A stretch of DNA of 64,000 nt, taken from sequence record MZ475898.1. One strand, 5' to 3'. Shown here in pieces: positions 30,835-57,441 of this stretch (within the stretch, counting starts at the first letter, position 1; every line of letters starts with the position of its first letter). The position numbers and the translations under genes were made by a program. The notes below the pieces were generated by a model. It ran no database searches and was not told where the DNA came from. It saw only the letters and a list, made by a program, of their open reading frames with translations.

Positions 30835-30882
30835 TGCGCTGTCTGCTGTCAGTAATTTGAAGCTACTATAGGAGACAGCGCA
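30835..30882 (+). promoter_or_regulatory. RBS-sequestering hairpin with TAATTT in the loop
   Basis: TGCGCTGTCT (30835-44) pairs perfectly with AGACAGCGCA (30873-82), covering part of GGAG and the A of ATG; TAATTT at 30853-58. Confidence 0.65.
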
Positions 30883-31220
30883 TGAAATATGATAAGACCA
30901 AAGACTACCAACCGTTCAAGTATCTTGAGCCGGACCCAAAGGCTCCAAGAGTAGGCTTCTACGGTTCGACTGGCCACACTGTCACAAAGGACGTTCTGAT
31001 AGGGCAGGACGTATGCGAGTTTGAGTTCAAGCCTGAAGAGTTGAACAATATGAATCGCGGTACGCTGCTCTTCCGTGCTAAAGATAGTGGCGGAACTATT
31101 GTCGTAAAGAAATGCTCTGTGCTTGGATTGAAAATGGTAATTACGCTAGAGAGAAGGGTGATTCAGTTCGGCAAGGTTCAAGCTGAATGGATGACCACAT
31201 CCCGACTGTATAACTACTAA
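30882..31220 (+). CDS. hypothetical protein (112 aa), putatively late
   Basis: AGGAG RBS. Confidence 0.6.
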   Translation: MKYDKTKDYQPFKYLEPDPKAPRVGFYGSTGHTVTKDVLIGQDVCEFEFKPEELNNMNRGTLLFRAKDSGGTIVVKKCSVLGLKMVITLERRVIQFGKVQAEWMTTSRLYNY

Positions 31221-31228
31221 CTGTAAAT
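31220..31228 (+). promoter_or_regulatory. ACTGTAAAT motif variant
   Basis: 35 nt upstream of parB ATG. Confidence 0.45.
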
Positions 31229-31262
31229 ACATTGTACAGAAGCAACTACAAGAGAAAAGAGA

Positions 31263-31961
31263 ATGGCAAAAATTGCTAAAGCAAAGGAAGGGAAAAAGAA
31301 AAGCAACCCTATGTTGATTGACCTGAAAAAGTTCAAGTCAGTTAAACAGCTTAAGGGTGCGAAGTACAACCCTCGTTTCATTACAGACAGCCGACTGAGA
31401 GCGCTCGAAGGTTCTTTGGGCAGCTTCGGTGATTTGTCTGGCGTGGTGTTCAACAACAGCGTAGACAGTGGCGTATTGATCTCAGGCCACCAGCGTCTCA
31501 AGTCGATTGAGAAGTGGGACTCGCGCATTGAGATTCAACAAACGTCTGACAAGTACGGCACGGTAGCGTTGGGTTATATCCATGCTACCAGCGCCAAAGG
31601 TAAAACGATCAGCATCCCACTGCGTATCGTTAACTGGTCAGATAAGAAAGTGGAGTTTGCTGCTAACATTGCTGCGAATGCCCACGGCGGTGAGTTCGAT
31701 AACAAAAAGCTCGCGTCTCTTGTTGAGAAGCTGGACCTGACTACAATCAAGCCAGCTCTTATCGGGCTTGACCCGTTAGAGATTCGCGGCCTGCAACAGA
31801 CGCTGAGCAAACAAGCTATCGTCGAGCAGGAAAAGCGTGTTGGTAAAACAACAGGCAAAATGAACGGCAGTACTGGCGAGTTCAAAGAGTACACGACTGA
31901 TGAAGTTGGTACTGCGCTGACCTGCACCTGCCCACGTTGTGGCTTTAAGTTCGAGGGATAA
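31263..31961 (+). CDS. ParB/Srx-like N-terminal domain protein with C-terminal Zn-ribbon
   Basis: YNPRFIT, SLGSFG, ISGHQRL, ANIAAN..GGEFD, CTCPRCGFKF. Confidence 0.85.
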   Translation: MAKIAKAKEGKKKSNPMLIDLKKFKSVKQLKGAKYNPRFITDSRLRALEGSLGSFGDLSGVVFNNSVDSGVLISGHQRLKSIEKWDSRIEIQQTSDKYGTVALGYIHATSAKGKTISIPLRIVNWSDKKVEFAANIAANAHGGEFDNKKLASLVEKLDLTTIKPALIGLDPLEIRGLQQTLSKQAIVEQEKRVGKTTGKMNGSTGEFKEYTTDEVGTALTCTCPRCGFKFEG

Positions 31962-31962
31962 C

Positions 31963-34098
31963 ATGATCATCAAGCCGCCTACAATGAAAGAGATTAATAA
32001 GCTGCCCAAGCCTTGGTCAGGTATGAGTTTCTTTGCAGGTTGCGGTGGTTCATCTACCGGTCACAAGATGGCCGGTATTAACATCCTACTGAGCAACGAG
32101 TTCGTGGACGCGGCTCGTGAATCGTATGAAGCGAACCATCCAACAACCAAAGTGTTGCCCCACGATATTCGTCGTCTTGACCCGAAAAAGCTGCTTAGCT
32201 ATTGCGGCCTGAGTCAGGGCGAACTGGACTTGCTCGACGGCAGTCCTCCGTGCTTCACCGAAGACACGTTCATTCATACCGACACTGGTATGAAGTTCAT
32301 CACTGATATGCGCATCGGTGACTTCGCTATGACCTCTGTTGGTAAGTATCATCCAGTGTATGACACGATGGTACGTCCGTATGACGGTCAGATGCACAGA
32401 ATTGAAACGCTGCTTGGTCAGAACAATGCAACGCCTGAACATCCGTTCTTTGTTCGTCGTCAGAATGAAGAAACTGGCGGGTACAGTGCGCCGTTCTGGT
32501 GTGACGCTAAAGATGTGCAGGAAGGTGACCTGTTAGGTACGCCTCGTGTTACGCCTGATATGGGCGAAGCACACACGCATGAGATTATCTCGTCGTTGAC
32601 TGCGCAGCTTGTGCGTTGGATTGCATTGCCTGAGTTCTGGTGGCTGATTGGTCACTGGTGCAATCGCGGTGCAATCGATAAGATTCGTGGTGTCGATGTT
32701 ATTCAATTCACCTCGATGACAGCGATGGAAAACTCGCTGGTGGAACAAGCGTTCGACGTGCTCAAGTTAAGCAGCATCAACAGCGCTTCGTCCGACATGG
32801 GCGTTCATCGTAAGACCGTTCGTGTTGTTATGGACACAGACCTGTTGCTGTTCTTGCGTATGTTTATCGCGCAGGGCAAGAAGTCTATGTCCCGCCGTCT
32901 GCCTGGCATGATCTTCCATCTGGCTAAAGAGCTGAAACAGCAATTCATTCTCGGCTATCTGGGTCGTGATTACGTCACAGCAATGGGCGTTGGTCATGCG
33001 TTAGAGGCTGACTCAAAGCGCTTCCTAGTTGAGATGAATTACCTGTGCTGCTCTGCGTTCAACAGACCGCTGTTCGATGCAATGTTGTTCACTGACTTGC
33101 ATTACGGTAGTCCGATGTTACCACCGAGTCGCTTCATTACCAAAGAGCACATCGGCTTCCTGTTCTTGCAAGAAGAGGTTAATTTCTTCTTTGAGTTCGA
33201 GCCGGAAGACCCGCATCTGTGGGTTGAAGTGATTGAGAACTTTACGCATCATGAAACGTGCAACGTCTATAACTTCTCAGTCAGTGTTGATGAGACGTAT
33301 GTTGCTAACGGCATGGTCGTGCATAACTGCAAAGGGTTCTCGACTGCTGGCGTGAAAGAAGACGGCTGGGGCAAAGAGGTTAAGTACAGCGGCAACAAGT
33401 ATCAGCAAGTCGATGACCTGTTCGATCAGTATTGCCGTATGCTCAAGCACATGCAGCCTAAAACGTTCACTGCGGAAAACGTTAGTGGCCTCGTTAAAGG
33501 TGCGTCGAAGGGTTACTTCATTGAAATCATGAAGACCTTTGATCAGCTGGGCTACTATGTGCGAGCGCCGTTGCTTAATGCTGCGTGGCTTGGTGTGCCT
33601 CAGTCTCGTGAGCGTATCATCTTTATGGGTGTGCGCAAAGACGTGGCGAAAGCACTCGGCTATAAAACTGCGTTGACTGCTGTGCCTGATGTAACACCTC
33701 AATCAAGCATGGCGTTCCTTGCAGATGCATTGCCGAACATTCGTCGCTATAAAGGTACGGAGCGTGACATTATCAAGTATCTGCCTGCTGTTAACGGCCC
33801 GATGCCTACGATTACCGCTGCTGATGCTATCGCATACGAAACAGCACGCTTCTCCTCTGCTGGCTTCATTGAAGACGACAAAGGGCACAGACGCAAGCTG
33901 ACGATTGACGAACTCAAAGTTGTGTCAGGCATGCCTAGTGATTACGTGCTCACAGGTAAGTTTGAAGAACAATGGGAACGTCTCGGTCGTGTGTGCGTAC
34001 CTGCAATGACGTGTGCTGCGGCAAGCGCGTTGATACGCCATGTGCTTGAGCCTTACGCAAAGCTGCGTAAAAAGAAACCTGGGGATCGTTTTCGTTAA
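31963..34098 (+). CDS. C5-cytosine methyltransferase homolog with intein; predicted carboxymethyltransferase (CmoX-like)
   Basis: Motif I FFAGCGG, IV DGSPP|CKGFS, VI AENVSGL, VIII PQSRER; motif X reads ERLGRVCVP (Arg where Asn is normal). Confidence 0.88.
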   Translation: MIIKPPTMKEINKLPKPWSGMSFFAGCGGSSTGHKMAGINILLSNEFVDAARESYEANHPTTKVLPHDIRRLDPKKLLSYCGLSQGELDLLDGSPPCFTEDTFIHTDTGMKFITDMRIGDFAMTSVGKYHPVYDTMVRPYDGQMHRIETLLGQNNATPEHPFFVRRQNEETGGYSAPFWCDAKDVQEGDLLGTPRVTPDMGEAHTHEIISSLTAQLVRWIALPEFWWLIGHWCNRGAIDKIRGVDVIQFTSMTAMENSLVEQAFDVLKLSSINSASSDMGVHRKTVRVVMDTDLLLFLRMFIAQGKKSMSRRLPGMIFHLAKELKQQFILGYLGRDYVTAMGVGHALEADSKRFLVEMNYLCCSAFNRPLFDAMLFTDLHYGSPMLPPSRFITKEHIGFLFLQEEVNFFFEFEPEDPHLWVEVIENFTHHETCNVYNFSVSVDETYVANGMVVHNCKGFSTAGVKEDGWGKEVKYSGNKYQQVDDLFDQYCRMLKHMQPKTFTAENVSGLVKGASKGYFIEIMKTFDQLGYYVRAPLLNAAWLGVPQSRERIIFMGVRKDVAKALGYKTALTAVPDVTPQSSMAFLADALPNIRRYKGTERDIIKYLPAVNGPMPTITAADAIAYETARFSSAGFIEDDKGHRRKLTIDELKVVSGMPSDYVLTGKFEEQWERLGRVCVPAMTCAAASALIRHVLEPYAKLRKKKPGDRFR
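32251..33327 (+). mobile_element. intein (359 aa) with degenerate LAGLIDADG endonuclease
   Basis: Starts CFTEDT, block B ATPEHPF, ends VYNFSV...YVANGMVVHN, followed by Cys(+1), the catalytic Cys. Confidence 0.92.
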
Positions 34099-34107
34099 GG
34101 AGCAGTT

Positions 34108-34191
34108 ATGTTGTGGGTCGGGTTTATTTTAGGTTTTATGCTCGGCACACTGCTAACGTTGCTGCTGCCTATCCCTTACTTGTCATGGTGA
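34108..34191 (+). CDS. 27-aa membrane peptide
   Basis: AAGGAG RBS; MLWVGFILGFMLGTLLTLLLPIPYLSW. Confidence 0.5.
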   Translation: MLWVGFILGFMLGTLLTLLLPIPYLSW

Positions 34192-34261
34192 CAATCTGTG
34201 TATTATCTCCGAAGCCTGTCACATTTGAAGGTGGGCATGTCGTCCACTAGGAGATAGTATT

Positions 34262-34432
34262 ATGACAAACGTAAACACAAACGAAATCGAAACCCCTTGG
34301 TACGAAGCAGACGATGAGCAGCTAACCGCAGAGCACATTGCAATCATTCAGCAAAAGGCTAATGCTGATGCGATAGCTCGCGGAAAGCCGTTGCCAGATG
34401 CGGATGACCCGAGCTGGATTCGTCTGTTCTAA
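34262..34432 (+). CDS. hypothetical protein (56 aa)
   Basis: AGGAG RBS; hand-translated MTNVNTNEIETPWY...SWIRLF. Confidence 0.55.
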   Translation: MTNVNTNEIETPWYEADDEQLTAEHIAIIQQKANADAIARGKPLPDADDPSWIRLF

Positions 34433-34469
34433 AATAAACTTGGGACAAGGATGTCCTTTGGAGAATGCC

Positions 34470-34604
34470 ATGAACGATCCCGTTGTTCTTTGGTCTATTA
34501 TCGGTGTGCTGTTGTTTCTGCTTGCGTGCGGTGGTGCGTTCATCTATTTCTTGCTGCGCACTGTATCGGAGACAATCTTCCGGAGTCTCTGGGGTGGACA
34601 CTAG
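34470..34604 (+). CDS. small membrane protein (44 aa)
   Basis: GGAG RBS; one TM helix. Confidence 0.5.
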   Translation: MNDPVVLWSIIGVLLFLLACGGAFIYFLLRTVSETIFRSLWGGH

Positions 34605-34773
34605 ACTTCGTGTGGGTCTAGCCTTCATCATTACAGGTGCACTCACATTCATGTCCTGTAGATCACTGGATATGTTATTTGATGACGCCCTACCAATATC
34701 TTTAGTGTTCGGCACTCTTGTCGCACTGCATGAGTTTCATTATCTCATGTCAATGAGGGATTTTGAAAATTGA
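34594..34773 (+). CDS. small membrane protein (59 aa)
   Basis: GTG start with GGAG 8 nt upstream; two hydrophobic segments. Confidence 0.4.
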   Translation: MDTRLRVGLAFIITGALTFMSCRSLDMLFDDALPISLVFGTLVALHEFHYLMSMRDFEN

Positions 34774-35006
34774 AAATACCTAAAAAGTGGCGAACGGCTT
34801 CGAACTCGTTGGCGCACACTGTTGAGATTATTAACGATAATGCGCAACTCGTTGTCGTGTATAAAGTGTGGTACGCTAGGCGCAAACGCTGGGAGTATTG
34901 TGCTGAGCCTATCGAAGTCGTCTTGTATATCATTAAGGACCTGCATTTTGGCGGGTCTCTTGCCGAACTCCGAGCAATTAAAGCCAGTCGAAAAAACAGC
35001 AACTGA
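34770..35006 (+). CDS. hypothetical protein (78 aa)
   Basis: TTG start overlapping the previous stop. Confidence 0.45.
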   Translation: MKIPKKWRTASNSLAHTVEIINDNAQLVVVYKVWYARRKRWEYCAEPIEVVLYIIKDLHFGGSLAELRAIKASRKNSN

Positions 35007-35125
35007 AATACTACACAGGCAAACCGAATGTGTCTTGGCCAGACCAAGACGAAACCGCCGAGTAATCGGCACTCATGGTGTGAGACACACAAGTGAACTC
35101 ACCCTCTACCTAAAAGGTATGTAAT

Positions 35126-35992
35126 ATGACTAAGCAACACACTAACTACAGCTCCGCATTCGCTATCAATGAAATGGCCGTGCTGTCTTTTGATAGCTTC
35201 GGTTCGGATAAGCTGTACGGCGTTGTATCAGGCGTTATGTTCTACGGCCCACAACGTATGTATCGCGTCAGTATATTCGCCAACGACGGTCCTGAGTCGG
35301 CGCCTACTGCGTTCCTGCATGAAGGTCGTCCTATCGATGGATTCATTGCAGATGACCTGCTGCCTGTAACTGACCAGTACGTCCCTCATATCGGTCATGT
35401 TGGTCGCTACGAATCAACTGACCACAAGACGTTTGGTGACTCACCATTCACTAGTGGTCAATTGGTTGAAATCAAGATCAAAGATATTGCCGACAGCTTT
35501 AACGTGCCTGTTCTCATCACAGGCGTCACTTACGTTGAAGGTAAGATCATGTACGATGTGAGCATCGAGCGCGCCTACTACAGGGATGGTCGTGTTAACG
35601 GTGGTCGTCTGGTGCGTGATACTCTTACCGGCATTGATGGTATCTTCATCAAACCTGTTGGTGGCTGGCCAGAAGAAGGCGATGACATTAGTGAGTATGC
35701 GCTGGAGATTGGCGTTGAAGACAGCGCTGTGCCTATCTCAAACGAGATTTTTGATACGGCGTATGATGCGCATCTCTTAGGTGTTCAGTGCGGTGAACTC
35801 AACAAGAACGCTGCACGTAATTTCTTAGGCGCTTACATCAACGCTGAGAATGCGCGTGTGGAAAAGTATCTCGGTGCCCGTACAGGTCGCTGGGACACAA
35901 ACAAACTGAATGAGAGCTCCAAACCTCGTTCAGTATCAGACATTGATACGTCGAAGATCTCCCAAGTTCAGCCTTGGCCAAAAGATGAATAA
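35126..35992 (+). CDS. hypothetical protein (288 aa)
   Basis: Long ORF ending before a terminator. Confidence 0.65.
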   Translation: MTKQHTNYSSAFAINEMAVLSFDSFGSDKLYGVVSGVMFYGPQRMYRVSIFANDGPESAPTAFLHEGRPIDGFIADDLLPVTDQYVPHIGHVGRYESTDHKTFGDSPFTSGQLVEIKIKDIADSFNVPVLITGVTYVEGKIMYDVSIERAYYRDGRVNGGRLVRDTLTGIDGIFIKPVGGWPEEGDDISEYALEIGVEDSAVPISNEIFDTAYDAHLLGVQCGELNKNAARNFLGAYINAENARVEKYLGARTGRWDTNKLNESSKPRSVSDIDTSKISQVQPWPKDE

Positions 35993-35998
35993 ATAACT

Positions 35999-36024
35999 AA
36001 AGGGTGGCTTCGGCTGCCCTTTTT
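35999..36024 (+). terminator. intrinsic terminator with UUCG loop, identical to the one at 19062
   Basis: AAAGGGTGGC-TTCG-GCTGCCC-TTTTT. Confidence 0.85.
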
Positions 36025-36026
36025 AG

Positions 36027-36036
36027 ATCTGTAAAC
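36027..36036 (+). promoter_or_regulatory. ATCTGTAAAC motif variant
   Basis: Intergenic after the terminator, 24 nt upstream of ATG 36060. Confidence 0.55.
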
Positions 36037-36059
36037 AACTTATACAAGAGGAGCATACA

Positions 36060-36413
36060 ATGAAAGACTATGTTATGAAGCGCCTTGCGGAAGACAATAT
36101 CGATCCTGAAAACAAGGATATGATTATGAGCCGCATCCGCGATATTATGGGAGGTGTGTTGCGTGCGCAGCCTACCTTGCCTCATATGTTCGGGGCACTG
36201 GAACACTCACGCGTACCGTCACTGTTTGATGCAATGGTTGTCTGCGACCACACGAACAACTCTGAGGAGGATATTGCAAACAACATCCTTAACGTTTCTA
36301 TTCTCCCTCGCACTCCAGTACAACAAATTTATTTCAACATCGATTCTGGGAGCAAAGAAGATGCGTCTTTTATTTCAAAGACTGTTAAAGTTTCTAAGTC
36401 TGAGCAGCAATAA
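36060..36413 (+). CDS. stand-alone tail-sheath C-terminal-domain-like protein (117 aa)
   Basis: MVVCDHTNNSEEDIANNILNVSILPRTPVQQIYFN resembles T4 gp18-type VVCD.TNN...ID.N......P...I. Confidence 0.6.
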   Translation: MKDYVMKRLAEDNIDPENKDMIMSRIRDIMGGVLRAQPTLPHMFGALEHSRVPSLFDAMVVCDHTNNSEEDIANNILNVSILPRTPVQQIYFNIDSGSKEDASFISKTVKVSKSEQQ

Positions 36414-36810
36414 GCCTAAGCAGGTTCATGATCGTGAGCTGCGCAAGTATCTGGCGCCTAAGCGCGAGCCATTCAACCCAGCTAAAGGCCCTCGTATTCC
36501 GCCGGTAGTCGACCGTGATTTGGAGTATCGTCGTCGCGTGCTCGCTACTGGCGGTCATCCGCCTAAGGCCGACCCTTCTTTGCGATCCAGCCCTCAGCGC
36601 CGTAGAGACGATGTACTTCCGTCACAAGTTGTGATGATGGATGTTAGTACAGGCTTCGGTCCTACTAAGAAGATCCCATCGCATAGCCAGCGTGATTCTG
36701 ATTCTTACTGTTCACCACATCATACGCACCACACGCCGAGTCACACACCGTCTGATAACTATGATGGTGGCTCGAACGATGGTGGCGGTGGAGGAGGTTC
36801 TTGTGATTAA
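36361..36810 (+). CDS. hypothetical protein with His/Gly/Ser-rich tail
   Basis: ATG 36361; ends HHTHHTPSH...DGGGGGGSCD. Confidence 0.55.
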   Translation: MRLLFQRLLKFLSLSSNKPKQVHDRELRKYLAPKREPFNPAKGPRIPPVVDRDLEYRRRVLATGGHPPKADPSLRSSPQRRRDDVLPSQVVMMDVSTGFGPTKKIPSHSQRDSDSYCSPHHTHHTPSHTPSDNYDGGSNDGGGGGGSCD

Positions 36811-37141
36811 AGTGTTATTGAACGCGATCGGTCTTCGCCTGATTACTAAAGCGAATCGCCGTAAGATCGAACAACACCACTACATGATGCAGGCCTGTAC
36901 GGATGTGTATGACTGGTGTGGTGCAGAGTTTCCTCAAGCTGCTGAGGCTGTTGAGCACGTTCGCACACGCGCACTAGGCTATGAAGGACGCTCTGGTCAC
37001 AATAGCAAAATCATGACCCCGTACGAAGCACATACGGGCATCAGCAACTGGCGTGAACTTATGCGCAATAAGTATAAGGACTGGCCGCCCGTTGATTTCC
37101 CTCTTGAGTATAAGAAAGACAATGAGCAAGAACGGCGATAA
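36803..37141 (+). CDS. hypothetical protein (112 aa)
   Basis: GTG start with GGAGG RBS. Confidence 0.55.
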   Translation: MIKVLLNAIGLRLITKANRRKIEQHHYMMQACTDVYDWCGAEFPQAAEAVEHVRTRALGYEGRSGHNSKIMTPYEAHTGISNWRELMRNKYKDWPPVDFPLEYKKDNEQERR

Positions 37142-37229
37142 AGAAAAGCTGCAAGAGTTCCGAGACGAACTTGAGCGCGACTGTGACGGCGAAGAGGAAG
37201 AGGACTTCGATTTCACCGATCATCAATAA
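37122..37229 (+). CDS. 35-aa acidic peptide
   Basis: Hand-translated MSKNGDKEKLQEFRDELERDCDGEEEEDFDFTDHQ. Confidence 0.45.
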   Translation: MSKNGDKEKLQEFRDELERDCDGEEEEDFDFTDHQ

Positions 37230-37257
37230 CCTGCTTCATCTATACCGAGAATAAAAT

Positions 37258-37479
37258 ATGACACACGAAACTCAAGGCATTATCTTACTGACCTGGCTGC
37301 TGGTCGGCATCTTTGTTTCACTTGCGAAGACCTTTCGTCTGCTTGGTGAATCAGACCGCAGCTACAAGAATGCACCCTTCTGGCTGTTCATCTTCAACAT
37401 GTTCTTCTGTCTGATTGTATGGCCGTTCCCTGTTGTGTTTTGTTCAGCACACCAGCGACTCCTCAATCGCTTCTGGTAA
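37258..37479 (+). CDS. small membrane protein (73 aa)
   Basis: Two TM helices. Confidence 0.55.
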   Translation: MTHETQGIILLTWLLVGIFVSLAKTFRLLGESDRSYKNAPFWLFIFNMFFCLIVWPFPVVFCSAHQRLLNRFW

Positions 37480-37488
37480 GGGACTACT

Positions 37489-38028: not shown

Positions 38029-38270
38029 TCGGCAACATGATCGTCCTAATTTTGCTAGGCTCTTTCTTGTTTGCATTCTGTGCTTATATAGCCTACAAGT
38101 TGGAGAGTAGCCACAAAGAGAAAGCAGATCAAGGTATCTATGCCTACCGCATAGCCTTCAATATGAAACGCTATCTGTTAGCGCGGCTGCTGTGGCGAAT
38201 CTCTAGCGCAGTCTATTGCGTGCTCTTTGCGTTCGCGCTTTGCTATCTATATTTCACAGGACAACTATGA
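38025..38270 (+). CDS. small membrane protein (81 aa)
   Basis: Two TM helices; GGAGG RBS. Confidence 0.55.
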   Translation: MIGNMIVLILLGSFLFAFCAYIAYKLESSHKEKADQGIYAYRIAFNMKRYLLARLLWRISSAVYCVLFAFALCYLYFTGQL

Positions 38271-38889: not shown

Positions 38890-38900
38890 GCTGCCCTTTT
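38875..38900 (+). terminator. intrinsic terminator, same stem family as 19062/35999
   Basis: AAGGGTGGCC-ATTA-GGCTGCCCTTTT. Confidence 0.75.
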
Positions 38901-38972
38901 CTGTTTAATTTGCCAGTGACGAGGGTCCTACACAAGTAGGAAATTTAACTAGCAACAGCTTAAGGAACTATC

Positions 38973-43608: not shown

Positions 43609-44326
43609 CATTAAATTCGGTAGTCCATTGCCTGATATGGCGCAGAAGTTAGGCGAAGAAATCATCAAAGGCCGTATCGCAATCCCCAACACTCTGTGGG
43701 ATTTGCATATTCAGTCTAATGTGCAGCTTCGTCCTATGACTGAGTTGGATATGGCTCTGACAAATACACTGAACGGCTCATGGACTTACGTGCCCAAATA
43801 CTTGGGTCCAGCGCGAGCAATGCGTCAGGCATACAGCTTAGGCCGAACTGTGACAAGCGATGAGCCTCGTGCAGGCTATGAATTGCTGTTGAACCAAATG
43901 ACCCGTCAGGCGGAGCAGCAATTCTTCTACAAGCCGCTGGGTGTGTTGCGCGATCATCTGCTCATTGACGGTAAAATCCGTATGCCTAAACGCTGGCATG
44001 TTGAGATTGGTCCGAAGTTTGCACTGACTGTTGCCTCTTCCTCGTTTGAGTTGTTCCTCAATCAGGTAGATCACCAGGAAATGCTGCGTACCGTGTATGA
44101 TATGCTATCGAGTGCGCTGGATAATAACGATCCCGCGAATGCATCACACGTGGTGTGCTCTGATAGTTCTCGCGGTCCTACGGATGTGCATGTGCTGAAC
44201 ACGCAAGCAACTCCACCAGCAGGTTCTGTCAATATGACCAATATTTTCAGATTCCTGCTGCATCCAATCGGTCATGATCTGACGCAAGACAGACTTCAGG
44301 ACTATTTGGAATCTGTAAATAACTGA
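43589..44326 (+). CDS. hypothetical protein (245 aa)
   Basis: ORF in operon. Confidence 0.6.
   Translation: MTSNLSDIKFGSPLPDMAQKLGEEIIKGRIAIPNTLWDLHIQSNVQLRPMTELDMALTNTLNGSWTYVPKYLGPARAMRQAYSLGRTVTSDEPRAGYELLLNQMTRQAEQQFFYKPLGVLRDHLLIDGKIRMPKRWHVEIGPKFALTVASSSFELFLNQVDHQEMLRTVYDMLSSALDNNDPANASHVVCSDSSRGPTDVHVLNTQATPPAGSVNMTNIFRFLLHPIGHDLTQDRLQDYLESVNN
44311..44320 (+). promoter_or_regulatory. ATCTGTAAAT motif
   Basis: Exact copy, 52 nt upstream of ATG 44372. Confidence 0.5.
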
Positions 44327-47409: not shown

Positions 47410-47458
47410 CCTCGTATTAGACTCTAGTAAATTAGCTTACTTGAAAGTAATAACGAGG
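47410..47458 (-). promoter_or_regulatory. RBS-sequestering hairpin with TAATTT in the loop
   Basis: mRNA CCUCGU(U)AUUA pairs with UAAUACGAGG; TAATTT at 47434-47429. Confidence 0.6.
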
Positions 47459-48042
47459 TCGTTGATTACTGTGGCTTTCGACTGATCATTGCCTGTTGTA
47501 GCGTTGGCATAGACCTTACCACCAGCAATGCGTAGTTCTGCACTGCTGTTCTCGTTACCCACTGAACCCACTGCAAGGAAGTCACAGTAGTATGAAGAGG
47601 TAGGCAGACCTGTTGTCAGATTCAGTGCTAACCCACCTCCAGCAACAAGAGCAAACCACGTAGGCGTTGCGTCCTTCGTGATATAGCTGTTGCGGGTATC
47701 GGTGTTAGCAGCAACCAGTTTGGTGTTCATGGCAGCACCGAGAGTAATCGGTACGTTACTTGCCATAAGCGTTATGCTAGGCTTTAAGCCGGCAACGCCA
47801 CCAACGTAGTCTGCATTGCGTGCAGTCAGGAACGAAGTCAGGTTCTGATAACATGCGTTCGAGCCTGCGTGCTGCGTAGCGCCGTTCAGGAAAGCATTCA
47901 TCTCAGCTTTAGTTGGCTGAGTACCTGTGAACAGCAACACTGCCACGTTCATTGAAGCATACGCGGTAGGCACAGAGCCAGACACATATGTTGAGATAGC
48001 GTTGCGCTGCATTGCGTTTGCTGTAGCTGGTAACATTCTCAT
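47437..48042 (-). CDS. virion fibre paralog, short type A (201 aa)
   Basis: LLFTGTQPT...ATPTWF...VGSVGNENSSAELRIAGG. Confidence 0.75.
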   Translation of the reverse strand: MRMLPATANAMQRNAISTYVSGSVPTAYASMNVAVLLFTGTQPTKAEMNAFLNGATQHAGSNACYQNLTSFLTARNADYVGGVAGLKPSITLMASNVPITLGAAMNTKLVAANTDTRNSYITKDATPTWFALVAGGGLALNLTTGLPTSSYYCDFLAVGSVGNENSSAELRIAGGKVYANATTGNDQSKATVINDLVITFK

Positions 48043-50548: not shown

Positions 50549-50599
50549 ATTATGCCCTTGTGTTGAAGACACATCAAATTAATGAGTGCGGCACATATA
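50546..50599 (-). promoter_or_regulatory. start-codon-sequestering hairpin with TAATTT in the loop
   Basis: mRNA UAUAUGUGCC pairs with GGCAU(A)AUAUG; TAATTT at 50581-50576. Confidence 0.45.
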
Positions 50600-50614
50600 G
50601 CACCGCACGCAATC

Positions 50615-51145
50615 TTATACCTGGAACGACAGATCGAGGAAGCGATAAGCCTGACTGGTCTTAATCGTACCACCGATGAACTGGAGCTCCGCATCAGACC
50701 CTTCTGCACCGACCGTACCGATAAGTACAGGACCTGCAAGCAGCGTACCCGGGGAGGACGTTAGCATAAAGTTAGCCCACGAAGCCACAGCAGCCGCACC
50801 AGCAGCGGCAACGATACGCGCTACGAAGTAGGTAGGTGTACCATCAGCCACGCCAACAAGTGTACGACTACTACCCGCAAGAGGCAGAGAGATTGTACGA
50901 GATGAAGGGTTGACAGAAGGTGTAAGGTTATCAATGGCGATAGAGCCAAGGAAGTTAGCCTGACTCAAACCTAAACCTGTAATACCCAGCACGTTCCAGC
51001 CTGATGTAAGAGACAGAGCCATGAGATTTTTCATCTGAGGCTTAGTGCCTTTAAACAAACCAATATGCAACGTATTTGCCGCAATTGCGGTAGCGGGAAA
51101 CACTGAGTTCAGTTGAGCCAAAGAAAGGCCACGGTTACTAATCAT
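50615..51145 (-). CDS. virion fibre paralog, type A (176 aa)
   Basis: IGLFKGTKP...GTPTYF...GTVGAEGSDAELQFIGG. Confidence 0.75.
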   Translation of the reverse strand: MISNRGLSLAQLNSVFPATAIAANTLHIGLFKGTKPQMKNLMALSLTSGWNVLGITGLGLSQANFLGSIAIDNLTPSVNPSSRTISLPLAGSSRTLVGVADGTPTYFVARIVAAAGAAAVASWANFMLTSSPGTLLAGPVLIGTVGAEGSDAELQFIGGTIKTSQAYRFLDLSFQV

Positions 51146-52218
51146 ACGCCTCTCCCTACGATTGCGTCAGCACGAACTTTGAAAGCAGGCACAGGCACGT
51201 CCGTAAACTTATCCAGCGTGTAAGTTGCGTCACGCATGTAGATGTCCGAAGTCGCTGCTTTCGTCAGGTCATCTGTGATAGTCACGTGGAACATCGCGCA
51301 GTAACGGCCAAGCACTGTAGTAATAGCAGCAGGATAGTTGAAAGCCCACTCAGTGGTAGTAGTATAGCCCGCGGCAGGAATTACATGCAGCATAGTCATG
51401 TGCTTGTACTTGCCCAATGTACGTGGCTTGGTAATGGTATAGTTGCCAAAGAAATGCAAACCAAACGGATAGTGACCAACAGTAGACCACGGGAAGGTCG
51501 GGTTCTTGTTTACGAGGCGGAACTTCTGCGCTTTAACAGAAGAAGGCAACACGTAATGATTAGAACCGTAGTTAGTGGACACACGGGTAGCTGCGTATAC
51601 GTCTACTGCATCTATCCACTGCCCGTCAACTTGAGCCTGCAAAATAGTTTGCTGGGTATTCGTTATCATGTACGTGCTGTTGGTAGAACCACATGTTGTG
51701 CCGAGGATGCTCTTGAGTTCAATCTCTGCACCGAAGTCATATTCAGCACACAGCCACCAGCCTTCCGTAGTCGTGTTATAGATATTGCTCAACACACGGT
51801 TACCTGATGTAGAAAAGGCAACAATCGTATCAAAGTGATGTGCAATCATCGCAGCAGCTATAGCCTCGTTGTAATACTGAGCCTGAATAGAGAAACGCTG
51901 ATCGATAGGTGCGAAACGAATTTTAGGCACGATACGCTTAGCACCAGCAGGCACGGTAATAGCCGAGTTACGTGGAACGGTTTCGATCCAAGAAGGAACA
52001 AAGTTGTTACCGCTAAACGTTGTATTGCTAATGCTTGGCGTAAACTGAGAAGCGATCGGCGATCCAATACGGGCCATGTTAAACAGACGCATAGCAACAG
52101 CTTCATTGAATGCGCTGTGAATCCCTTTCTCACCATCGGCAGGTGCGTCAGTATCGTAGAGTAGACCAAAATACTGAGCGTTGCCTGACAGCAGAGGGTT
52201 GTACGGTAGAATCTCCAT
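51142..52218 (-). CDS. virion fibre paralog, type B (358 aa)
   Basis: AEYDFGAEI, LPSSVKAQKFRLV, FGLHFFGNY, ITDDL. Confidence 0.75.
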   Translation of the reverse strand: MEILPYNPLLSGNAQYFGLLYDTDAPADGEKGIHSAFNEAVAMRLFNMARIGSPIASQFTPSISNTTFSGNNFVPSWIETVPRNSAITVPAGAKRIVPKIRFAPIDQRFSIQAQYYNEAIAAAMIAHHFDTIVAFSTSGNRVLSNIYNTTTEGWWLCAEYDFGAEIELKSILGTTCGSTNSTYMITNTQQTILQAQVDGQWIDAVDVYAATRVSTNYGSNHYVLPSSVKAQKFRLVNKNPTFPWSTVGHYPFGLHFFGNYTITKPRTLGKYKHMTMLHVIPAAGYTTTTEWAFNYPAAITTVLGRYCAMFHVTITDDLTKAATSDIYMRDATYTLDKFTDVPVPAFKVRADAIVGRGV

Positions 52219-52225
52219 AATGTCC

Positions 52226-52807
52226 TCAGCTAAAAGTTATGTTATTGAGAACGATAGGACCGCTCAGTGTGTAAGTACCATCACCATTATCCGTGAGAGT
52301 CGCACCCATCTGAGTCAAGTCAGCAGGCGTAAGCTCAATAACGGAGGGTATCGCAGTTGTTGTACCGATGGAGGCAACGCCACTGAGGAACAAATACATG
52401 CGATTGAACGGTTGCGTGTATGTGATGCGACCCAAGTTCTGAATCAGAATATCCAACATACGAGTACCATCACCCTGATTGATGATACGCACGGCGTTAG
52501 AACTGGAATTCACGACTGCACTCATCGTACAGTTAACGCCAGCAGCAGTCAGCGCTGTGCTCAGAGCATTGATCGTGATGTTCGACGCATACAACGTATT
52601 CCAAATAGAGTCTGGAATGGTATCGCCCGTAGAGAAAAGAATAGCTGCTCCTACTTCGGTACTGTACGGAGCACCGCCGCCTTGCACAGCAACAGCGTTA
52701 TAGGGGGTCACTAGTGCTGGCACCCAAGGCGCATCCACTGGAGAACTTGAGTTGTTAGAACTCAGAGCATCACCACGCATGTTCATCATGGCTTTAGAAA
52801 TATACAT
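52226..52807 (-). CDS. putative virion protein (193 aa), divergent A-like
   Basis: AILFSTGDTIP; position in array. Confidence 0.6.
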   Translation of the reverse strand: MYISKAMMNMRGDALSSNNSSSPVDAPWVPALVTPYNAVAVQGGGAPYSTEVGAAILFSTGDTIPDSIWNTLYASNITINALSTALTAAGVNCTMSAVVNSSSNAVRIINQGDGTRMLDILIQNLGRITYTQPFNRMYLFLSGVASIGTTTAIPSVIELTPADLTQMGATLTDNGDGTYTLSGPIVLNNITFS

Positions 52808-53709
52808 CAGCTACTCCTTGTGGTGAAGCGCAGCTTAGGACAATACATGATTGTCTTCTGGTTAGGAATAACGTCGCCCACGATCTTGAATGGACCTGAC
52901 GTACCGCACGCACCCGCCGCAAACATAATGTCATCAGAGTAGTCAATGCTACCATGAGTGAACGTATTGCAGTGAGTGAAAGCAGCCCACGTAGGAGCAG
53001 TTGCAGCAGCGCTTGGTGCAGCATCTACGGAACTCAACAGGATGCGAGGCATGGACGCAGTGGTGCCTGAGTATTTGAAGCGATAGCGCTTAGCAGCACG
53101 CGGTGTAGACAGAGCAAGACAAGTAGCCTCACCTGCAACAGCCGTAGCACTACCTAACGCGTATTCAGTTGCACCATCGTCAGACAACGCTACCAGCGTA
53201 AAGCCGTCAGAAACAGTACCGAGGAACTTGATGTGCGTTACGGTAACCGCAGTGTCAAACTCAATGTCCGTATTGCTTGAGGCGAAACGTGAGTACACGG
53301 ACGCTACGGACCCAACGCCAAGAGGCAGCGTGATGTTTCTGTCAGTGAAACCGCTACGCGTAATGCGATTAGGCAGAAGCTGATTAACAGCGAGCGCAGC
53401 AGTTCCCACAGTCCCGTAGTACGAAACGCCTTTAGGTATATACTGCGACTGTAGAGCAAGCGCAATAACGTTACCGTTCTCTGTTCCTGTCACTGGGTTA
53501 CGCACAATACCAATTGCTTGGTTGTACATGTCAGCAAGTGACTTCTGGTTGAAAGCCGCAGCGAAGCCCGCATCAGATGTAGGCAGCTTACCGCTAAATG
53601 CAAAGATATTCCAGCCGGCGCCTACGTTAGGGTCATTCAGGACACCAGCTACGTTTGAGGCCGACCCAACAACTGCTTGAGCCATTTGGCGAGTATTGAT
53701 GATTTTCAT
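52807..53709 (-). CDS. virion fibre paralog, type B (300 aa)
   Basis: IFAFSGKLPT, DIEFDTAVTVTHIKF, AKRYRFKY, PTWAAF. Confidence 0.7.
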   Translation of the reverse strand: MKIINTRQMAQAVVGSASNVAGVLNDPNVGAGWNIFAFSGKLPTSDAGFAAAFNQKSLADMYNQAIGIVRNPVTGTENGNVIALALQSQYIPKGVSYYGTVGTAALAVNQLLPNRITRSGFTDRNITLPLGVGSVASVYSRFASSNTDIEFDTAVTVTHIKFLGTVSDGFTLVALSDDGATEYALGSATAVAGEATCLALSTPRAAKRYRFKYSGTTASMPRILLSSVDAAPSAAATAPTWAAFTHCNTFTHGSIDYSDDIMFAAGACGTSGPFKIVGDVIPNQKTIMYCPKLRFTTRSS

Positions 53710-54167
53710 TATCCCACCACCGGTGCAACAGGTTTGTTGGTAACTTTCGTATCGGACAGATCGAGATTGCCTGTCTGCACACGAAACACGATGTTATCAA
53801 ACAGCACGTCCAGTGTTGCTGTTGTGACGAACTGTCCACACACCACAGGCGCGTACTGCACAGGCGCTGGTGGGTTTGAGTTGAACGACTCAGGCATAAA
53901 CTTAGACTGAGACTGCGTAGCCAGCACAGGTTTAAGTGTCAGCGTATCAACAGCCGCAGTACGCTTGCGCTGAATAAGCGACCACACATTCGCACCAAGC
54001 GTCAACGAAATAGCGGTAGCGCTAGTACGCGTCAGACTAATAGCCGACTGGTTTTCGTTGTCGTACTTACGGTTGGGCTGAGAGGAGCTGCTAATCTCTT
54101 GCTGTGAAAGCACGAACGTAAAGTCCGCAAACATATCTGGGTCGTATGTGACGACAGGAATAAACAT
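53709..54167 (-). CDS. putative virion protein, type D (MFIPVVTYD, 152 aa)
   Basis: N-terminus shared with 56232..56879. Confidence 0.65.
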   Translation of the reverse strand: MFIPVVTYDPDMFADFTFVLSQQEISSSSQPNRKYDNENQSAISLTRTSATAISLTLGANVWSLIQRKRTAAVDTLTLKPVLATQSQSKFMPESFNSNPPAPVQYAPVVCGQFVTTATLDVLFDNIVFRVQTGNLDLSDTKVTNKPVAPVVG

Positions 54168-54169
54168 CG

Positions 54170-55264
54170 TTACACTCCTTGGCGAATGCTGTATTTGTCA
54201 ATGATAGGCGTGTAGGCCGCATTCGCACTTGAACCATAGCCGCCTGTAACGATACTACCAGTAACATTCGGCTTAACAATCGCATACGTGAAGCTATCCA
54301 CAACAGTACCGTTGATGGAAATAGTATGGATGTTTGACAGTGCGTTATACACATACTTGATGTGGACGTTGCTGGCGGTTTTCATCGCGGCATACGCAGC
54401 AATAGGACGAACCACTTTAGCAGCAGCCGCACCGCCACCTGAGTTGTTCCACAACAGGAAGCCTTTCTCGTTCGAACGGTCAAAGGATAGCGTCAGTCTG
54501 TCAGTTAACGTGGTGCCCATCTTGAGCAGCGTGAACTCAGAGTAGTCCGTAGTGCTTGACTGACGATAATCAAACTCAATGGTGAATGACTGACTCAGAT
54601 CGATATTGGACGTGAGAGACATAACGCCTGTCGTGCCTAAATCGATACCAGCAGCACCGTCAGCAGGAGCTTTAGCGTTACCACTTACAGTCGCAGTGGC
54701 TCCAAGATAGTCAGCAAAGCTGGTGGCGCCAGGCGTCCACAACGAACTGTCCAGAGCTACAACCTCTGAACCGCCAAGCCATGTCGCTGTTGTGTTCTCT
54801 ACCCACATGTTGGTCAGTGGAATAGTGAAGCTGTTGATCGTAATCTGCGTCTTATACCCCGCTGCATCGTACTTGATGTTCAGGTCAGGATAAAGCAGAG
54901 TAACGTCCGTGCCTACAGTCAGACACACAGGCAAGATGCCACCCAGAATAAGATGAGTAGGCACGCCTTCTGCAACTGCGGTCAACAGGCAATCAGATAC
55001 GGAAATCTTCTGACGGTCGATAGTGCGAACGCAGTTGGTGCCTTTAGCCAGCACAGTACAGATACCGCTAGACGCTGCTAGTGCTGCATCAAACGAGTAA
55101 CCTGCACCAGTCTGTGTCTGATAGTTAAGGCACTTATTAATGTCTGTCTCAGTGAATCCGTTGTTGAGACGAACGAGATAACAGGACTTATCGTCGGCGG
55201 TAGCCTGAGCAAACAGACGAGTAAGCTGAGGTACGGCAGATGCTGCAAATAAACTGTATTTCAT
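54170..55264 (-). CDS. virion protein with A-like N-terminus and C-terminal LamG/ConA-like domain (364 aa)
   Basis: AVAEGVPTHL; FTIEFDY...HIKYVYN...ISING...IDKYSIRQGV; start moved to 55264. Confidence 0.7.
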   Translation of the reverse strand: MKYSLFAASAVPQLTRLFAQATADDKSCYLVRLNNGFTETDINKCLNYQTQTGAGYSFDAALAASSGICTVLAKGTNCVRTIDRQKISVSDCLLTAVAEGVPTHLILGGILPVCLTVGTDVTLLYPDLNIKYDAAGYKTQITINSFTIPLTNMWVENTTATWLGGSEVVALDSSLWTPGATSFADYLGATATVSGNAKAPADGAAGIDLGTTGVMSLTSNIDLSQSFTIEFDYRQSSTTDYSEFTLLKMGTTLTDRLTLSFDRSNEKGFLLWNNSGGGAAAAKVVRPIAAYAAMKTASNVHIKYVYNALSNIHTISINGTVVDSFTYAIVKPNVTGSIVTGGYGSSANAAYTPIIDKYSIRQGV

Positions 55265-55265
55265 G

Positions 55266-56222
55266 TTATACCTCAGTAGACAGGCGCATCTGAGCGATAG
55301 TAGCGAACTCACCCGGGCCCAATGCGGTAGCCTGTACTTCGATTGGCTTACCACTACCGATAGCTCCGACTTCGCAAGCGAAATAAGTTGGGATGTAGTT
55401 GCCATTTGCCAAAGCACCATAGTTGGTATCTTGAATCACGACGATAGCGCTTTGCACAGTCTTGTAACTCGCATTCACACCAACATCAGATGCAGTCACA
55501 GGAATAGCGCGGCGGTTAGCTACAGAGTGGACAAGTCTAAAGCGATTGCTTGCAGCAGGCACGGTGGCCAGCATGTTACCTTCCTGGTTGGCTGCAATAG
55601 ACCACGCAACAGCAGTTCCAATAGAACCATCACTGTTGATAGGAGCAATCGTGCCGCTCGTAATCAGCGACTGATCGTTAACGTCAGACAGCATGGCATT
55701 AATCGTTACCACGTTGTCATACGTCAGGTCAGTAGTTGATAAGTGAATCCCAGGCTGCGCTGCATCGTGAGGGATACCCGCATAGTCCCAAGGACGATAG
55801 CCCGCTTGACCAATACCCCACAGTGCTTTGTTGCCTGCATCGATCGAGGTAGTGTACGCAGTTTGAATCGCAACGTTTGCAGCAGCCGAGTAGCCTACAG
55901 GAAATGCCTTAGAAGGATAGTGAATCGTTGCCCCGTTCTTTGGTTCGTACACAGAACCCGAACGCGCTTTCCATCCCTCAGACAAATCGAGCAGTGGCAG
56001 CAGGCCTTCTGTTGTTGGACGCAATACTACCTTAGTTGCTGCAACTGCGTTGTTGAACAGGTTACGCATGTCAGTCAAATGCTGACGGAAGTTGCCTTGA
56101 TCTGCAATGGTGTTCTCAAAGAAGAACACGTTGGCGATAATACCATTGGACGCTGTATTCGCCCAGCCGGAGCCTTGCTGTAGCACAGACAGCGGCAGAA
56201 TGTTATGTCCTAAGATACGCAT
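55266..56222 (-). CDS. virion fibre paralog, divergent type B (318 aa)
   Basis: ASNRFRLV, CEVGAIGSG. Confidence 0.65.
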   Translation of the reverse strand: MRILGHNILPLSVLQQGSGWANTASNGIIANVFFFENTIADQGNFRQHLTDMRNLFNNAVAATKVVLRPTTEGLLPLLDLSEGWKARSGSVYEPKNGATIHYPSKAFPVGYSAAANVAIQTAYTTSIDAGNKALWGIGQAGYRPWDYAGIPHDAAQPGIHLSTTDLTYDNVVTINAMLSDVNDQSLITSGTIAPINSDGSIGTAVAWSIAANQEGNMLATVPAASNRFRLVHSVANRRAIPVTASDVGVNASYKTVQSAIVVIQDTNYGALANGNYIPTYFACEVGAIGSGKPIEVQATALGPGEFATIAQMRLSTEV

Positions 56223-56231
56223 CAGAACCTC

Positions 56232-56879
56232 TTAATCATATAAAAATACACCAGCACGCAGACGCACTCTATCAATAACTCCAAACGGTCCAGCGACATT
56301 TCCATATCTGCCTATAGCCCAAGGCGTATCGCTTACTTTCGGCATAGCCTGTACGACTTGAGCAACTTGTTGGCCATTGACAAAGATCGTGTGGGTCTTA
56401 GCTGTTGCGTCATAGACATACTTGAAAGGGACCATGCTCAAAGTCAACAGGCCGCCAAGAACACCAGACTGAGCAATTTGCTTTTCTGCCCATGAGCCGC
56501 CCGTGCTATACCAAACGCCTATGCGAATGTTAGAGCCATTCCATTGGTTCTGCATCAACAGCTCCACCTTGTCTGGGTTAGACTTTAGGTAGGACATGAA
56601 TATGAACTGTGCTAACACATTCGTATCAGTCTGTGCATAGAGCAAATCAAGCGTATATGAGGCAGTCGTATCAAACAGCAGATTACCTGCGGTCTTCACG
56701 TTACCACCACAGACAATACCTACATCAGACAGAGACAATGAAGAAGCAGCAAACTGATTGCCTACATAATCAGTGAACCCGTCTGCGGAGAAGTTGTCAC
56801 GGTCAAAGGCCACCAGCTCATCGCCTGTGAACCAAGGAGGCACGTCCGCTATTTCGTATGAAACGACAGGAATATGCAT
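56232..56879 (-). CDS. type D N-terminus plus LamG/ConA-like domain (215 aa)
   Basis: MHIPVVSYE; KYVYDAT...IFVNG...WAIG...IDRVRLRAGV. Confidence 0.7.
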   Translation of the reverse strand: MHIPVVSYEIADVPPWFTGDELVAFDRDNFSADGFTDYVGNQFAASSLSLSDVGIVCGGNVKTAGNLLFDTTASYTLDLLYAQTDTNVLAQFIFMSYLKSNPDKVELLMQNQWNGSNIRIGVWYSTGGSWAEKQIAQSGVLGGLLTLSMVPFKYVYDATAKTHTIFVNGQQVAQVVQAMPKVSDTPWAIGRYGNVAGPFGVIDRVRLRAGVFLYD

Positions 56880-56880
56880 G

Positions 56881-57378
56881 TTAGAACTCCTTAGAGTCTC
56901 TGCATACAGTCGCTAAGAACTTACCGTTACGCAAGTTGTCTGAACTAAGAATCAGGTCAGCACCCGAACCCGCAGCACCGATAGTCAAGATCAAGAAGCC
57001 ACCGTAAGGCGTGCTTGCAATGCTCTTGTTGAACACAATCACGTTGTACTGAGCAAGCAACTCGGTGATTGTTCCAGCAAACGTTCCCTGAAGTGTGGCA
57101 GCAAGTTTGAATTTATATTTATTGCCTGAACCGTGAATCCAGCGAACAGGATTGTTAGTCACAGACGTTAGGTCAAGCACAGCAGTTGCGCCAATCGCAG
57201 CCTGAACGGTAGTACCATCAGCAACTACGATGTTCGCAGGGTCAGGCACTTTCGCAAAGCAGATTGTTTTCTGCATGTTTGAAAGGCCATACTTCAACGG
57301 CGGATCAGCAGCAGGACGTTTGCCTGCGTCTGGGATAACGATGCCGTTAGCGACCAGCGGGAAAGAAATGATTTCCAT
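56881..57378 (-). CDS. putative virion protein, A-like (165 aa)
   Basis: LTIGAAGSGADLILSS. Confidence 0.65.
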   Translation of the reverse strand: MEIISFPLVANGIVIPDAGKRPAADPPLKYGLSNMQKTICFAKVPDPANIVVADGTTVQAAIGATAVLDLTSVTNNPVRWIHGSGNKYKFKLAATLQGTFAGTITELLAQYNVIVFNKSIASTPYGGFLILTIGAAGSGADLILSSDNLRNGKFLATVCRDSKEF

Positions 57379-57379
57379 T

Positions 57380-57441
57380 ATAGTTCTCCAGTTGTTTCGC
57401 GTTTAAATTACTGACTGCATGTGGTAAGTGCGGAACACTAT
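57380..57441 (-). promoter_or_regulatory. RBS-sequestering hairpin with TAATTT in the loop
   Basis: mRNA AUAGUGUUCC pairs with GGAGAACUAU (one mismatch, one GU); TAATTT at 57410-57405. Confidence 0.5.

Follow-up and report, generated by a model that had tools for sequence, protein, structure and literature searches.

A hairpin enclosing a TAATTT motif at the start of g50 in Erwinia jumbo phage pEa_SNUABM_25 is a candidate translational gate

The g50 locus

We analyzed a stretch of 64,000 nucleotides (the window), which matches bases 1-64000 of Erwinia phage pEa_SNUABM_25 (MZ475898.1) exactly, for RNA hairpins that may close the ribosome-binding site (RBS) of a gene while holding a putative promoter element, TAATTT, between their arms. 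This jumbo phage infects Erwinia amylovora, has a genome of 263 kb, and is 99.8% identical (over the query) to pEa_SNUABM_7, of the genus Snuvirus. Some 35 other records, belonging to Alexandravirus phages of Erwinia and Dickeya, share 60-80% DNA identity with the window, and the gene order is conserved. Genes 1-78 of pEa_SNUABM_25 lie on the + strand, and those from 46 kb to 185 kb lie on the - strand. A sequence-only reading of the window had proposed that such gates recur at four gene starts, those of g50, g82, g86, and g95 (here sites 1 to 4), on the model of leader hairpins in phage T4. The four pairings are present as it described them: perfect at site 1, with one bulge at site 2, with one bulge and two G-U pairs at site 3, and with one mismatch and one G-U pair at site 4. 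TAATTT stands 29, 33, 33, and 32 nt before the respective ATG codons, and every 3' arm touches the Shine-Dalgarno sequence (SD), the AUG, or both. As a recurrent gate, the proposal proved overstated for the window, where we find one clear case (g50) and one plausible case (g82), and where the other two (g86 and g95) are rejected. No Rfam family matched anywhere in the window at the gathering score.

The clear case, g50, is preceded on the + strand by g47, g48, and g49 (Table 1). The first of these (28163-29263) is a thymidylate synthase by its Pfam family, a gene that the record annotates only as hypothetical. The g50 protein itself has no match to a Pfam or PHROG family, its AlphaFold2 model is of low confidence (predicted local distance difference test score, 52), and its orthologs share 61-67% identity. 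Judging from the gene order, transcripts of g47-g48-g49 would read into g50; the 51-nt spacer between g49 and g50 contains the hairpin only, without any terminator-like element. We also considered the hairpin itself as an intrinsic terminator and rejected this, as it has no T-run behind it. With the thymidylate synthase unit upstream and a second promoter-like motif, CTGTAAA, followed by a ParB-like gene directly after it, g50 appears as an island of the TAATTT class in a region of another class.

At this site, TGCGCTGTCT (30835-44) and AGACAGCGCA (30873-82) are exact reverse complements of each other, and the stem extends to 30835-30849 paired with 30868-30882, giving 14 bp, one G-G mismatch, and an 18-nt loop. 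The minimum free energy (MFE) of the fold is -27.2 kcal/mol (z = -4.26), and none of 200 shuffled sequences folds as well. Thermodynamic prediction has the RBS pairing with sequence upstream of the motif at an ensemble probability of 0.86-0.91 in pEa_SNUABM_25 and 0.72-0.93 in eight relatives. An RNA beginning at 30866, on the other side of the motif, is predicted to be unstructured (MFE 0).

Conservation of the g50 hairpin

Upstream regions of g50 orthologs were collected from GenBank relatives, from IMG/VR genomes, and from one metagenome contig, amounting to about 11 distinct lineages; the metagenome scan for g50 relatives gained just one lineage beyond the others. In all of them, the 5' arm falls after the stop codon of the upstream gene and before cagTAATTT, and the 3' arm spans the SD to the AUG. 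The arm sequences vary by lineage (TGCGCTGTCT/AGACAGCGCA, GAGTCTCCC/GGGAGACTC, GGCCTCTTGT/ACAGGAGGCC, and AGGTCTCCTGT/ACAGGAGACCT), and exact exchanges between the arms can be seen among closely related leaders (GTTGGC/GCTAAC, GTCGGC/GCTGAC, and TTCGGC/GCCGAC). When the leaders were folded individually, 10 of 10 lineages gave the hairpin architecture, with z-scores from -1.4 to -4.4, as did the metagenome contig. Cognate arms pair at -21.7 kcal/mol, compared with -16.6 kcal/mol for non-cognate arms (permutation p = 5e-5). In a covariance-model alignment, 78% of cells are paired and double changes occur in five pairs (13 cells), which none of 500 shuffles reached and which compares with 33-59% of cells in slid controls; this count is supportive rather than proof, since the alignment was made to fit the structure and its sequences are related. 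With a plain MAFFT alignment as input, RNAalifold returned no consensus structure for the g50 leaders, because indels and shifts in helix register separate the lineages, and a fixed-column count on seven sequences was weak.

The wobble pairs retained in the g50 hairpin are G-U on the sense strand only, which points to an RNA structure rather than a DNA palindrome. An element acting at the level of DNA, whether an operator bound by a dimeric regulator or a promoter structured as a cruciform or hairpin, would account for repeats that bracket or include the putative promoter motif, and at g82, the motif is the centre of a palindrome. We nevertheless regard such an element as very improbable. Many of the retained pairs are sense-strand G-U pairs, which would read as A-C mismatches on the opposite strand and within a DNA palindrome; the arms differ completely between lineages while their complementarity is kept, unlike a protein-binding site; and the position of the 3' arm is invariably that of the SD.

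Another possibility is translational coupling, in which the hairpin at g50, and perhaps those at g82 and at g165 (see below), would shut the RBS until the ribosome ending the upstream gene melts the 5' arm, with TAATTT being an independent promoter or incidental. The position of the g49 stop codon is in its favor, lying upstream of the 5' arm by 5 nt in pEa_SNUABM_25 and by 2-9 nt in every relative, and conserved pairing of an RBS with upstream sequence also occurs without TAATTT, for example at g87, the start of which overlaps the end of g88. However, the anti-SD part of the arm is about 13-19 nt past the stop codon, which, going by established footprint sizes, would be at or beyond the reach of the terminating ribosome. 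Coupling also has no need for an invariant loop motif at the ATG distance typical of its class, and this motif is seen in every lineage. We consider coupling unlikely as the explanation, while giving it some weight.

The g82, g86, and g95 starts

The second hairpin lies at the end of g83 and before g82 on the - strand, and it folds as proposed with a z-score of -1.86 (11 of 200 shuffles were as good). The predicted probability of RBS pairing with sequence 5' of the motif is 0.66-0.68 in pEa_SNUABM_25 and 0.26-0.79 in relatives. Here the alignment was not fitted to a structure: RNAalifold on a MAFFT alignment of 12 lineages recovers two helices, an outer CCUC:GAGG helix and an inner helix of 10 bp with a (GA)UAAU loop. 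Paired cells make up 97% of the total (30-52% in slid controls), four of the inner pairs are compensatory, as in the change from GCTT/AAGC to GCAT/ATGC, and 0 of 500 shuffles reach the score. The outer helix is kept in 12 of 12 relatives, its sole changes being C-to-U substitutions that retain G-U pairs, and both of its sides are otherwise constrained, one as coding sequence and the other as the SD. The longer 10-bp pairing of the sequence-only reading is present only in the Snuvirus lineage. As at g50, a role as an intrinsic terminator was rejected, no T-run being found behind the hairpin. From its conservation and covariation, we conclude that the g82 hairpin is real; its function as a translational gate is plausible but weaker.

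At g86, the motif is invariant in 14 relatives, and what precedes it is a different structure. The MFE fold of site 3 is a hairpin at 50608-50586, wholly upstream of TAATTT, that competes with the proposed pairing. It has nine pairs, six of them G-C, is terminator-like in a consensus scan, and carries the tail TCATTAATTT. Every relative has a GC-rich stem-loop ending right before tcatTAATTT, with stems that differ (GTGCGGTGC.., GGTGGCGTTC.., CGTGGTGGCttcgGCTGCCACG, and CAGTGGTG..), and we take the element preceding the g86 motif to be a conserved, putative terminator-like hairpin. For the g86 RBS, predicted pairing with sequence 5' of the motif has a probability of 0.05 in pEa_SNUABM_25 and of at most 0.26 in nine phages. 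A gate at g86 was rejected on these grounds: the pairing is at chance level, it is absent in relatives, and the terminator-like hairpin is a conserved rival for it. Downstream of TAATTT, the g86 leader (50549-50575, - strand) contains a small hairpin, AUGUGUCU..AAGGGCAU (UGUCUUU..AAGGGCA in relatives), that overlaps the SD and could persist in a short transcript, depending on the start site.

The fold proposed at g95 is less stable than its shuffles (z = +1.18). The RBS pairs upstream of the motif at a probability of only 0.01-0.15 in pEa_SNUABM_25, and the values across phages are inconsistent (0.02-0.39). Lineages share no related sequence 5' of the motif, and this lack of conservation upstream of g95 comes from g96-g99, which differ in number and sequence between relatives. 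These are four adjoining genes of about 350 amino acids each (57443-61712, - strand) and have the appearance of a tandem paralog array. The g95 gate was rejected for its low stability and unconserved pairing, and the pairings proposed at both g86 and g95 are best explained as chance complementarity. Covariation in relatives, which the sequence-only reading had named as a check, and predicted sequestration of the SD, the AUG, or both were borne out at g50 and g82 and failed at g86 and g95.

TAATTT and a second promoter-like motif

The occurrence of TAATTT is strongly non-random. It is rarer than expected in the genome (53 copies compared with 99.5) and in the window (14 copies compared with 23.9 in shuffles), where short spacers hold seven coding-strand copies. 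At least 22 copies in the genome sit on the coding strand 28-51 nt (median 35.5) 5' of annotated starts, in spacers that make up about 5% of the genome, and about nine copies are directly 3' of a terminator-like hairpin and T-run. Across the genome-wide sites, the flanks give the consensus W-C-G-N-TAATTT, without a conserved -35-like position. Two tail sheath paralog genes and the gene for a PAAR protein are among those that the motif precedes, whereas the genes for DNA polymerase I, helicase, single-stranded DNA-binding protein (SSB), and the sigma factor are preceded by aATCTGTAAAta and not by TAATTT. In Dickeya phage AD1, 20 of 21 orthologous sites keep the motif, with spacing differing by 0-4 nt. 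It is invariant at all four reported sites in each relative examined, and at the g82 and g95 sites, it persists in relatives of only about 50% protein identity; at g95, this includes the distant relatives L046 and L047. Because of this distribution, the class of genes it precedes, its avoidance elsewhere, and its conservation, we read TAATTT as a promoter element, most likely the -10-like element of late or structural promoters in this phage group. Sigma70-type promoters were rejected as an explanation, a consensus scan returning a count no higher than in shuffles.

The same features bear on the possibility that the motif marks RNA processing or stability. Stems might be cut by RNase III, a UAAUUU loop might be cut by an RNase E-type activity so that the RBS is freed, or the stem-loops might be protective. 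In the loops, the AU-rich motif is unpaired; it is found in spacers between the genes of long operons; and the g82 stem-loop follows directly after a stop codon and resembles a 3' stabiliser. However, the copies directly behind strong terminators and T-runs are placed where a new start is needed and where there would be little RNA to cut, and specificity for a gene class with avoidance elsewhere in the genome is typical of a promoter. Most motif sites also lack a surrounding stem. A processing element therefore seems to us a poor candidate, with only a small chance of being correct.

The second motif, aATCTGTAAAta (CTGTAAA), has 58 copies genome-wide compared with about 32 expected. Its copies lie 35-50 nt 5' of genes for replication and nucleotide metabolism, including those for DNA polymerase I, SSB, primase, the sigma factor, and the ParB-like g51, and the motif is often directly behind terminators. 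It probably represents an early or middle promoter class. As for the factor that could read TAATTT, g243 encodes a sigma-family protein of 345 amino acids that matches PHROG 17569, "RNA polymerase sigma factor" (E = 3e-156), with no Pfam match at E <= 0.01. Gene product 237 of AD1 is annotated likewise as an RNA polymerase sigma factor, and a sigma70-like factor has been reported for this phage group (PMC7412058). Host RNA polymerase with the phage-encoded sigma factor probably reads TAATTT, where the link between sigma factor and motif is one that we infer.

Table 1. Coordinates of the hairpins, motifs, and genes discussed, by position in the window.
Feature	Position	Strand	Remarks
TAATTT	5314..5319	+	Between the terminase large subunit gene and g5/portal, 35 nt before ATG; without consistent gate
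TAATTT	12505..12510	+	39 nt before g17; same motif class, without consistent gate
CTGTAAA motif copies in the window	21520-21526, 24215-24221, 31221-31227, 44313-44319	+	
g47 (thymidylate synthase), g48, g49	28163..30830	+	Upstream of g50; Pfam PF00303 for g47
g50 candidate gate, 5' arm (TGCGCTGTCT g CTGT)	30835..30849	+	Begins 5 nt after the g49 TGA stop (30828-30830)
TAATTT (context tCAGTAATTT), putative late-promoter -10-like element	30853..30858	+	In the g50 hairpin loop, 29 nt before ATG
g50 candidate gate, 3' arm (ATAG g AGACAGCGCA)	30868..30882	+	Covers the SD AGGAG (30870-30874) and the A of ATG (30882)
g50, putatively gated gene, conserved 112-amino-acid protein	30882..31220	+	Annotated coding sequence
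CTGTAAA motif	31221..31227	+	Directly after g50; 42 nt before g51 (ParB-like)
TAATTT	38906..38911	+	Directly 3' of terminator-like hairpin and T-run; 67 nt before g66
g82 outer 3' arm (TAATACGAGG)	47410..47419	-	Covers GAGG of the SD GAGGAG (47413-47408); start codon 47401-47399
g82 inner helix, TAATTT (47434-47429) at tip	47422..47445	-	Final motif bases are part of the 3' side
g82 outer 5' arm (CCTCGTTATTA)	47448..47458	-	Last codons of g83; CCTC is the anti-SD
TAATTT upstream of g86 (start 50548)	50576..50581	-	Motif real, gate unsupported; invariant in 14 relatives
Terminator-like GC hairpin (GTGCGGTGC..GTGCCGCAC) then TCATTAATTT	50586..50608	-	Contains the 5' arm proposed for site 3 (50599-50590)
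TAATTT upstream of g95 (start 57378)	57405..57410	-	Motif real; proposed gate 57441-32 / 57389-80 unsupported

Recurrence across the genome

To compare the sites as a class, each RBS was paired with the upstream region of other TAATTT sites, using 22 motif sites. The cross-paired duplexes have a mean energy of -9.5 kcal/mol (standard deviation, 3.1), and 40% of them reach -10 kcal/mol or lower. Site 1, at -25.7 kcal/mol, is an outlier, while sites 2, 3, and 4 (-10.8, -10.6, and -9.4 kcal/mol) are in the bulk of this null. Two results count against a general device. The 22 TAATTT sites as a whole are not significantly enriched, with mean duplex energies of -10.45 compared with -9.53 kcal/mol in controls and mean pairing probabilities of 0.246 compared with 0.217. 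Across 185 orthologous gene starts in pEa_SNUABM_25 and AD1, the genes with pairing of at least 0.6 in both genomes were 2 of the 17 with the motif and 3 of the 166 without it (Fisher p = 0.069). The first motif copy in Table 1 illustrates the inconsistency, with RBS pairing probabilities of 0.24 in pEa_SNUABM_25 and 0.72 in AD1. A promoter-bridging gate is not established as a class property of TAATTT sites; the device is found at only about three of the roughly 22.

Some of these observations would suit chance complementarity between anti-SD-like words and a purine-rich SD, without function at any of the four sites: the energies of sites 2 to 4 are within the null, site 4 is less stable than its shuffles, and the class-level tests are non-significant. 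Chance does not readily explain site 1, with its z-score of -4.26, its hairpin retained in about 11 lineages as both arms change, and its preference for cognate arms, nor does it explain site 2, where the paired cells and the four compensatory pairs come from an unfitted alignment. That all four pairings are fortuitous is accordingly a reading to which we assign little probability.

The third case is g165, a tail sheath paralog at 133308-135016 of the genome, outside the window. Around its TAATTT, near 135011, there is a perfect 11-bp anti-SD:SD pairing, ATTTATCTCCT/AGGAGATAAAT, kept in 14 of 15 distinct relatives, including one exchange of A-U to G-C. The gene comes after a terminator and downstream of replication-type genes. 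By its sequence and conservation, g165 makes a further good case of the same layout. Both g50 and g165 are where transcription of an earlier class could enter a TAATTT gene, which fits the T4 logic, as a pattern of two.

Conserved pairing of upstream sequence with the RBS in both pEa_SNUABM_25 and AD1 was also observed at genes without TAATTT, at 50615-51145 of the window and at 64903-65646 and 162209-163288 of the genome (- strand). Pairing at these genes may reflect translational coupling or merely conserved coding sequence.

Other features of the window

Several further observations were made along the way. A near-identical terminator stem-loop, GGGTGGCTTCGGCTGCCC with a T-run, is reused at about 19066-19090 and 36010-36034 of the window (+ strand) and near 135040, 146400, and 163340 of the genome, and several of its copies are trailed by CTGTAAA or TAATTT. 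In the structural block, 1.3 kb without an annotated gene (86379-87696 of the genome, outside the window) lies directly upstream of the TAATTT that precedes the PAAR-like g121, and AD1 has a similar gap. The product of g52 (31963-34098, + strand; 711 amino acids) has DNA methyltransferase matches in PHROG, while the record annotates it only as hypothetical. Finally, g83 (47437-48042, - strand) and g87 (50615-51145, - strand) match one common PHROG, 17152.

Interpretation

Taken together, we think the odds slightly favor TAATTT being a late promoter and the RNA hairpin a gate at g50, and less certainly at g82, that closes the gene on read-through RNA and leaves it translated from short RNA. The sequence 5' of the motif would serve through its complementarity to the SD/AUG region, which is strong at g50 and weaker at g82. 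RNA reading through from upstream, at g50 from the thymidylate synthase-g48-g49 unit, would fold the hairpin and bury the RBS. RNA begun just downstream of TAATTT would be without the 5' arm and would keep an open leader that can be translated. Promoter activity, late timing, start position, read-through, and the effect on translation are all parts of this account that we infer.

Besides the class-level tests and the fitted g50 alignment described above, several points weigh against this account. The distance from the g49 stop codon to the g50 5' arm is 5-9 nt, and a ribosome terminating there could melt the hairpin; the result would be translational coupling and not silencing. There is no independent reason for g50 to be late, as it is without an assigned function. 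At g82, the helix covering the SD is just 4 bp in most relatives and is without compensatory change. Moreover, g82 is inside a TAATTT-class block, with the motif also carried by the upstream g86, and a temporal gate makes little sense there because read-through would come from promoters of the same class. Lastly, the motif is unreported in the literature that we searched, and the same is true of transcriptomics for this phage group.

A broader scenario is possible, although we hold it tentatively and would lean against it. In it, the jumbo phages of the PaBG/Lu11/Alexandra/Snuvirus group would have a two-code programme, with aATCTGTAAAta for replication-type genes and WCGN-TAATTT, read with a phage sigma factor, for late genes, and they would have evolved RNA gates independently of T4 that silence the late genes exposed to read-through (g50 and g165). 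The motif at the tip of the g82 hairpin would then hint at pausing, processing, or discrimination between read-through and locally begun RNA.

If the gate is confirmed, a solution known from T4 would have arisen in an unrelated jumbo-phage lineage under a different promoter code. Early read-through RNA would carry a late gene silently, and the RBS would be unmasked only on RNA from the promoter inside the hairpin. This would also flag g50 as a gene whose early expression may harm the phage. Apart from the gates, the analysis offers a candidate late-promoter consensus and a second motif for phages with genomes of about 260 kb that are almost wholly annotated as hypothetical. The Erwinia and Dickeya phages in question are under development against fire blight, and the motifs would aid operon maps, timing classes, and engineering; the pair of TAATTT and CTGTAAA is possibly a more broadly useful by-product than the gates themselves. 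The four sites also serve as a caution, since the four 10-bp pairings look alike and yet two of them do not exceed chance.

Comparison with known systems

The structures described here can be compared with several known arrangements. The g86 spacer shares with an intrinsic terminator followed by a promoter its GC-rich stem-loop and T-rich tail, conserved with changed stems; it differs in that the tail, TCATTAATTT, overlaps TAATTT, and termination is predicted. Translational coupling hairpins, as in polycistronic operons and RNA phages, likewise have an RBS closed by upstream sequence near the preceding stop codon, whereas the g50 loop holds a conserved promoter-like motif and the spacer is 51 nt long.

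Late promoters of T4 have just a -10-like element, which the phage sigma factor gp55 recognizes. The TAATTT sites resemble promoters of this type in being a short AT-rich element without a -35 partner, about 30-40 nt before the starts of structural genes, in a phage with a sigma-family factor of its own. The element itself differs, being TAATTT with W-C-G-N upstream and not the T4 TATAAATA; as TATAAATA is not what is found at -10, the likeness is one of logic and not of membership.

The closest parallel to the proposed gate is the group of T4 genes comprising e (lysozyme), soc, 49, and I-TevI, in which the SD or AUG is sequestered on transcripts initiated upstream and in which the RNAs from late promoters, placed directly 5' of the RBS, are without the 5' strand and are translated (PMC3014915). 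The sequence-only reading had drawn this parallel for all four sites in the window; it fits g50 well and g82 moderately, and it does not fit g86 or g95. The phage comes from an unrelated lineage, the jumbo phages of the PaBG/Lu11/Alexandra group, and is not a T-even phage, and the gate here is a predicted one. Only a minority of the motif sites would be gated, and g82 is found inside a block of its own class. At g50 and g165, the logic would be the same as that of the T4 leader hairpins, with the gated gene placed downstream of genes of another class, for nucleotide metabolism or for replication.

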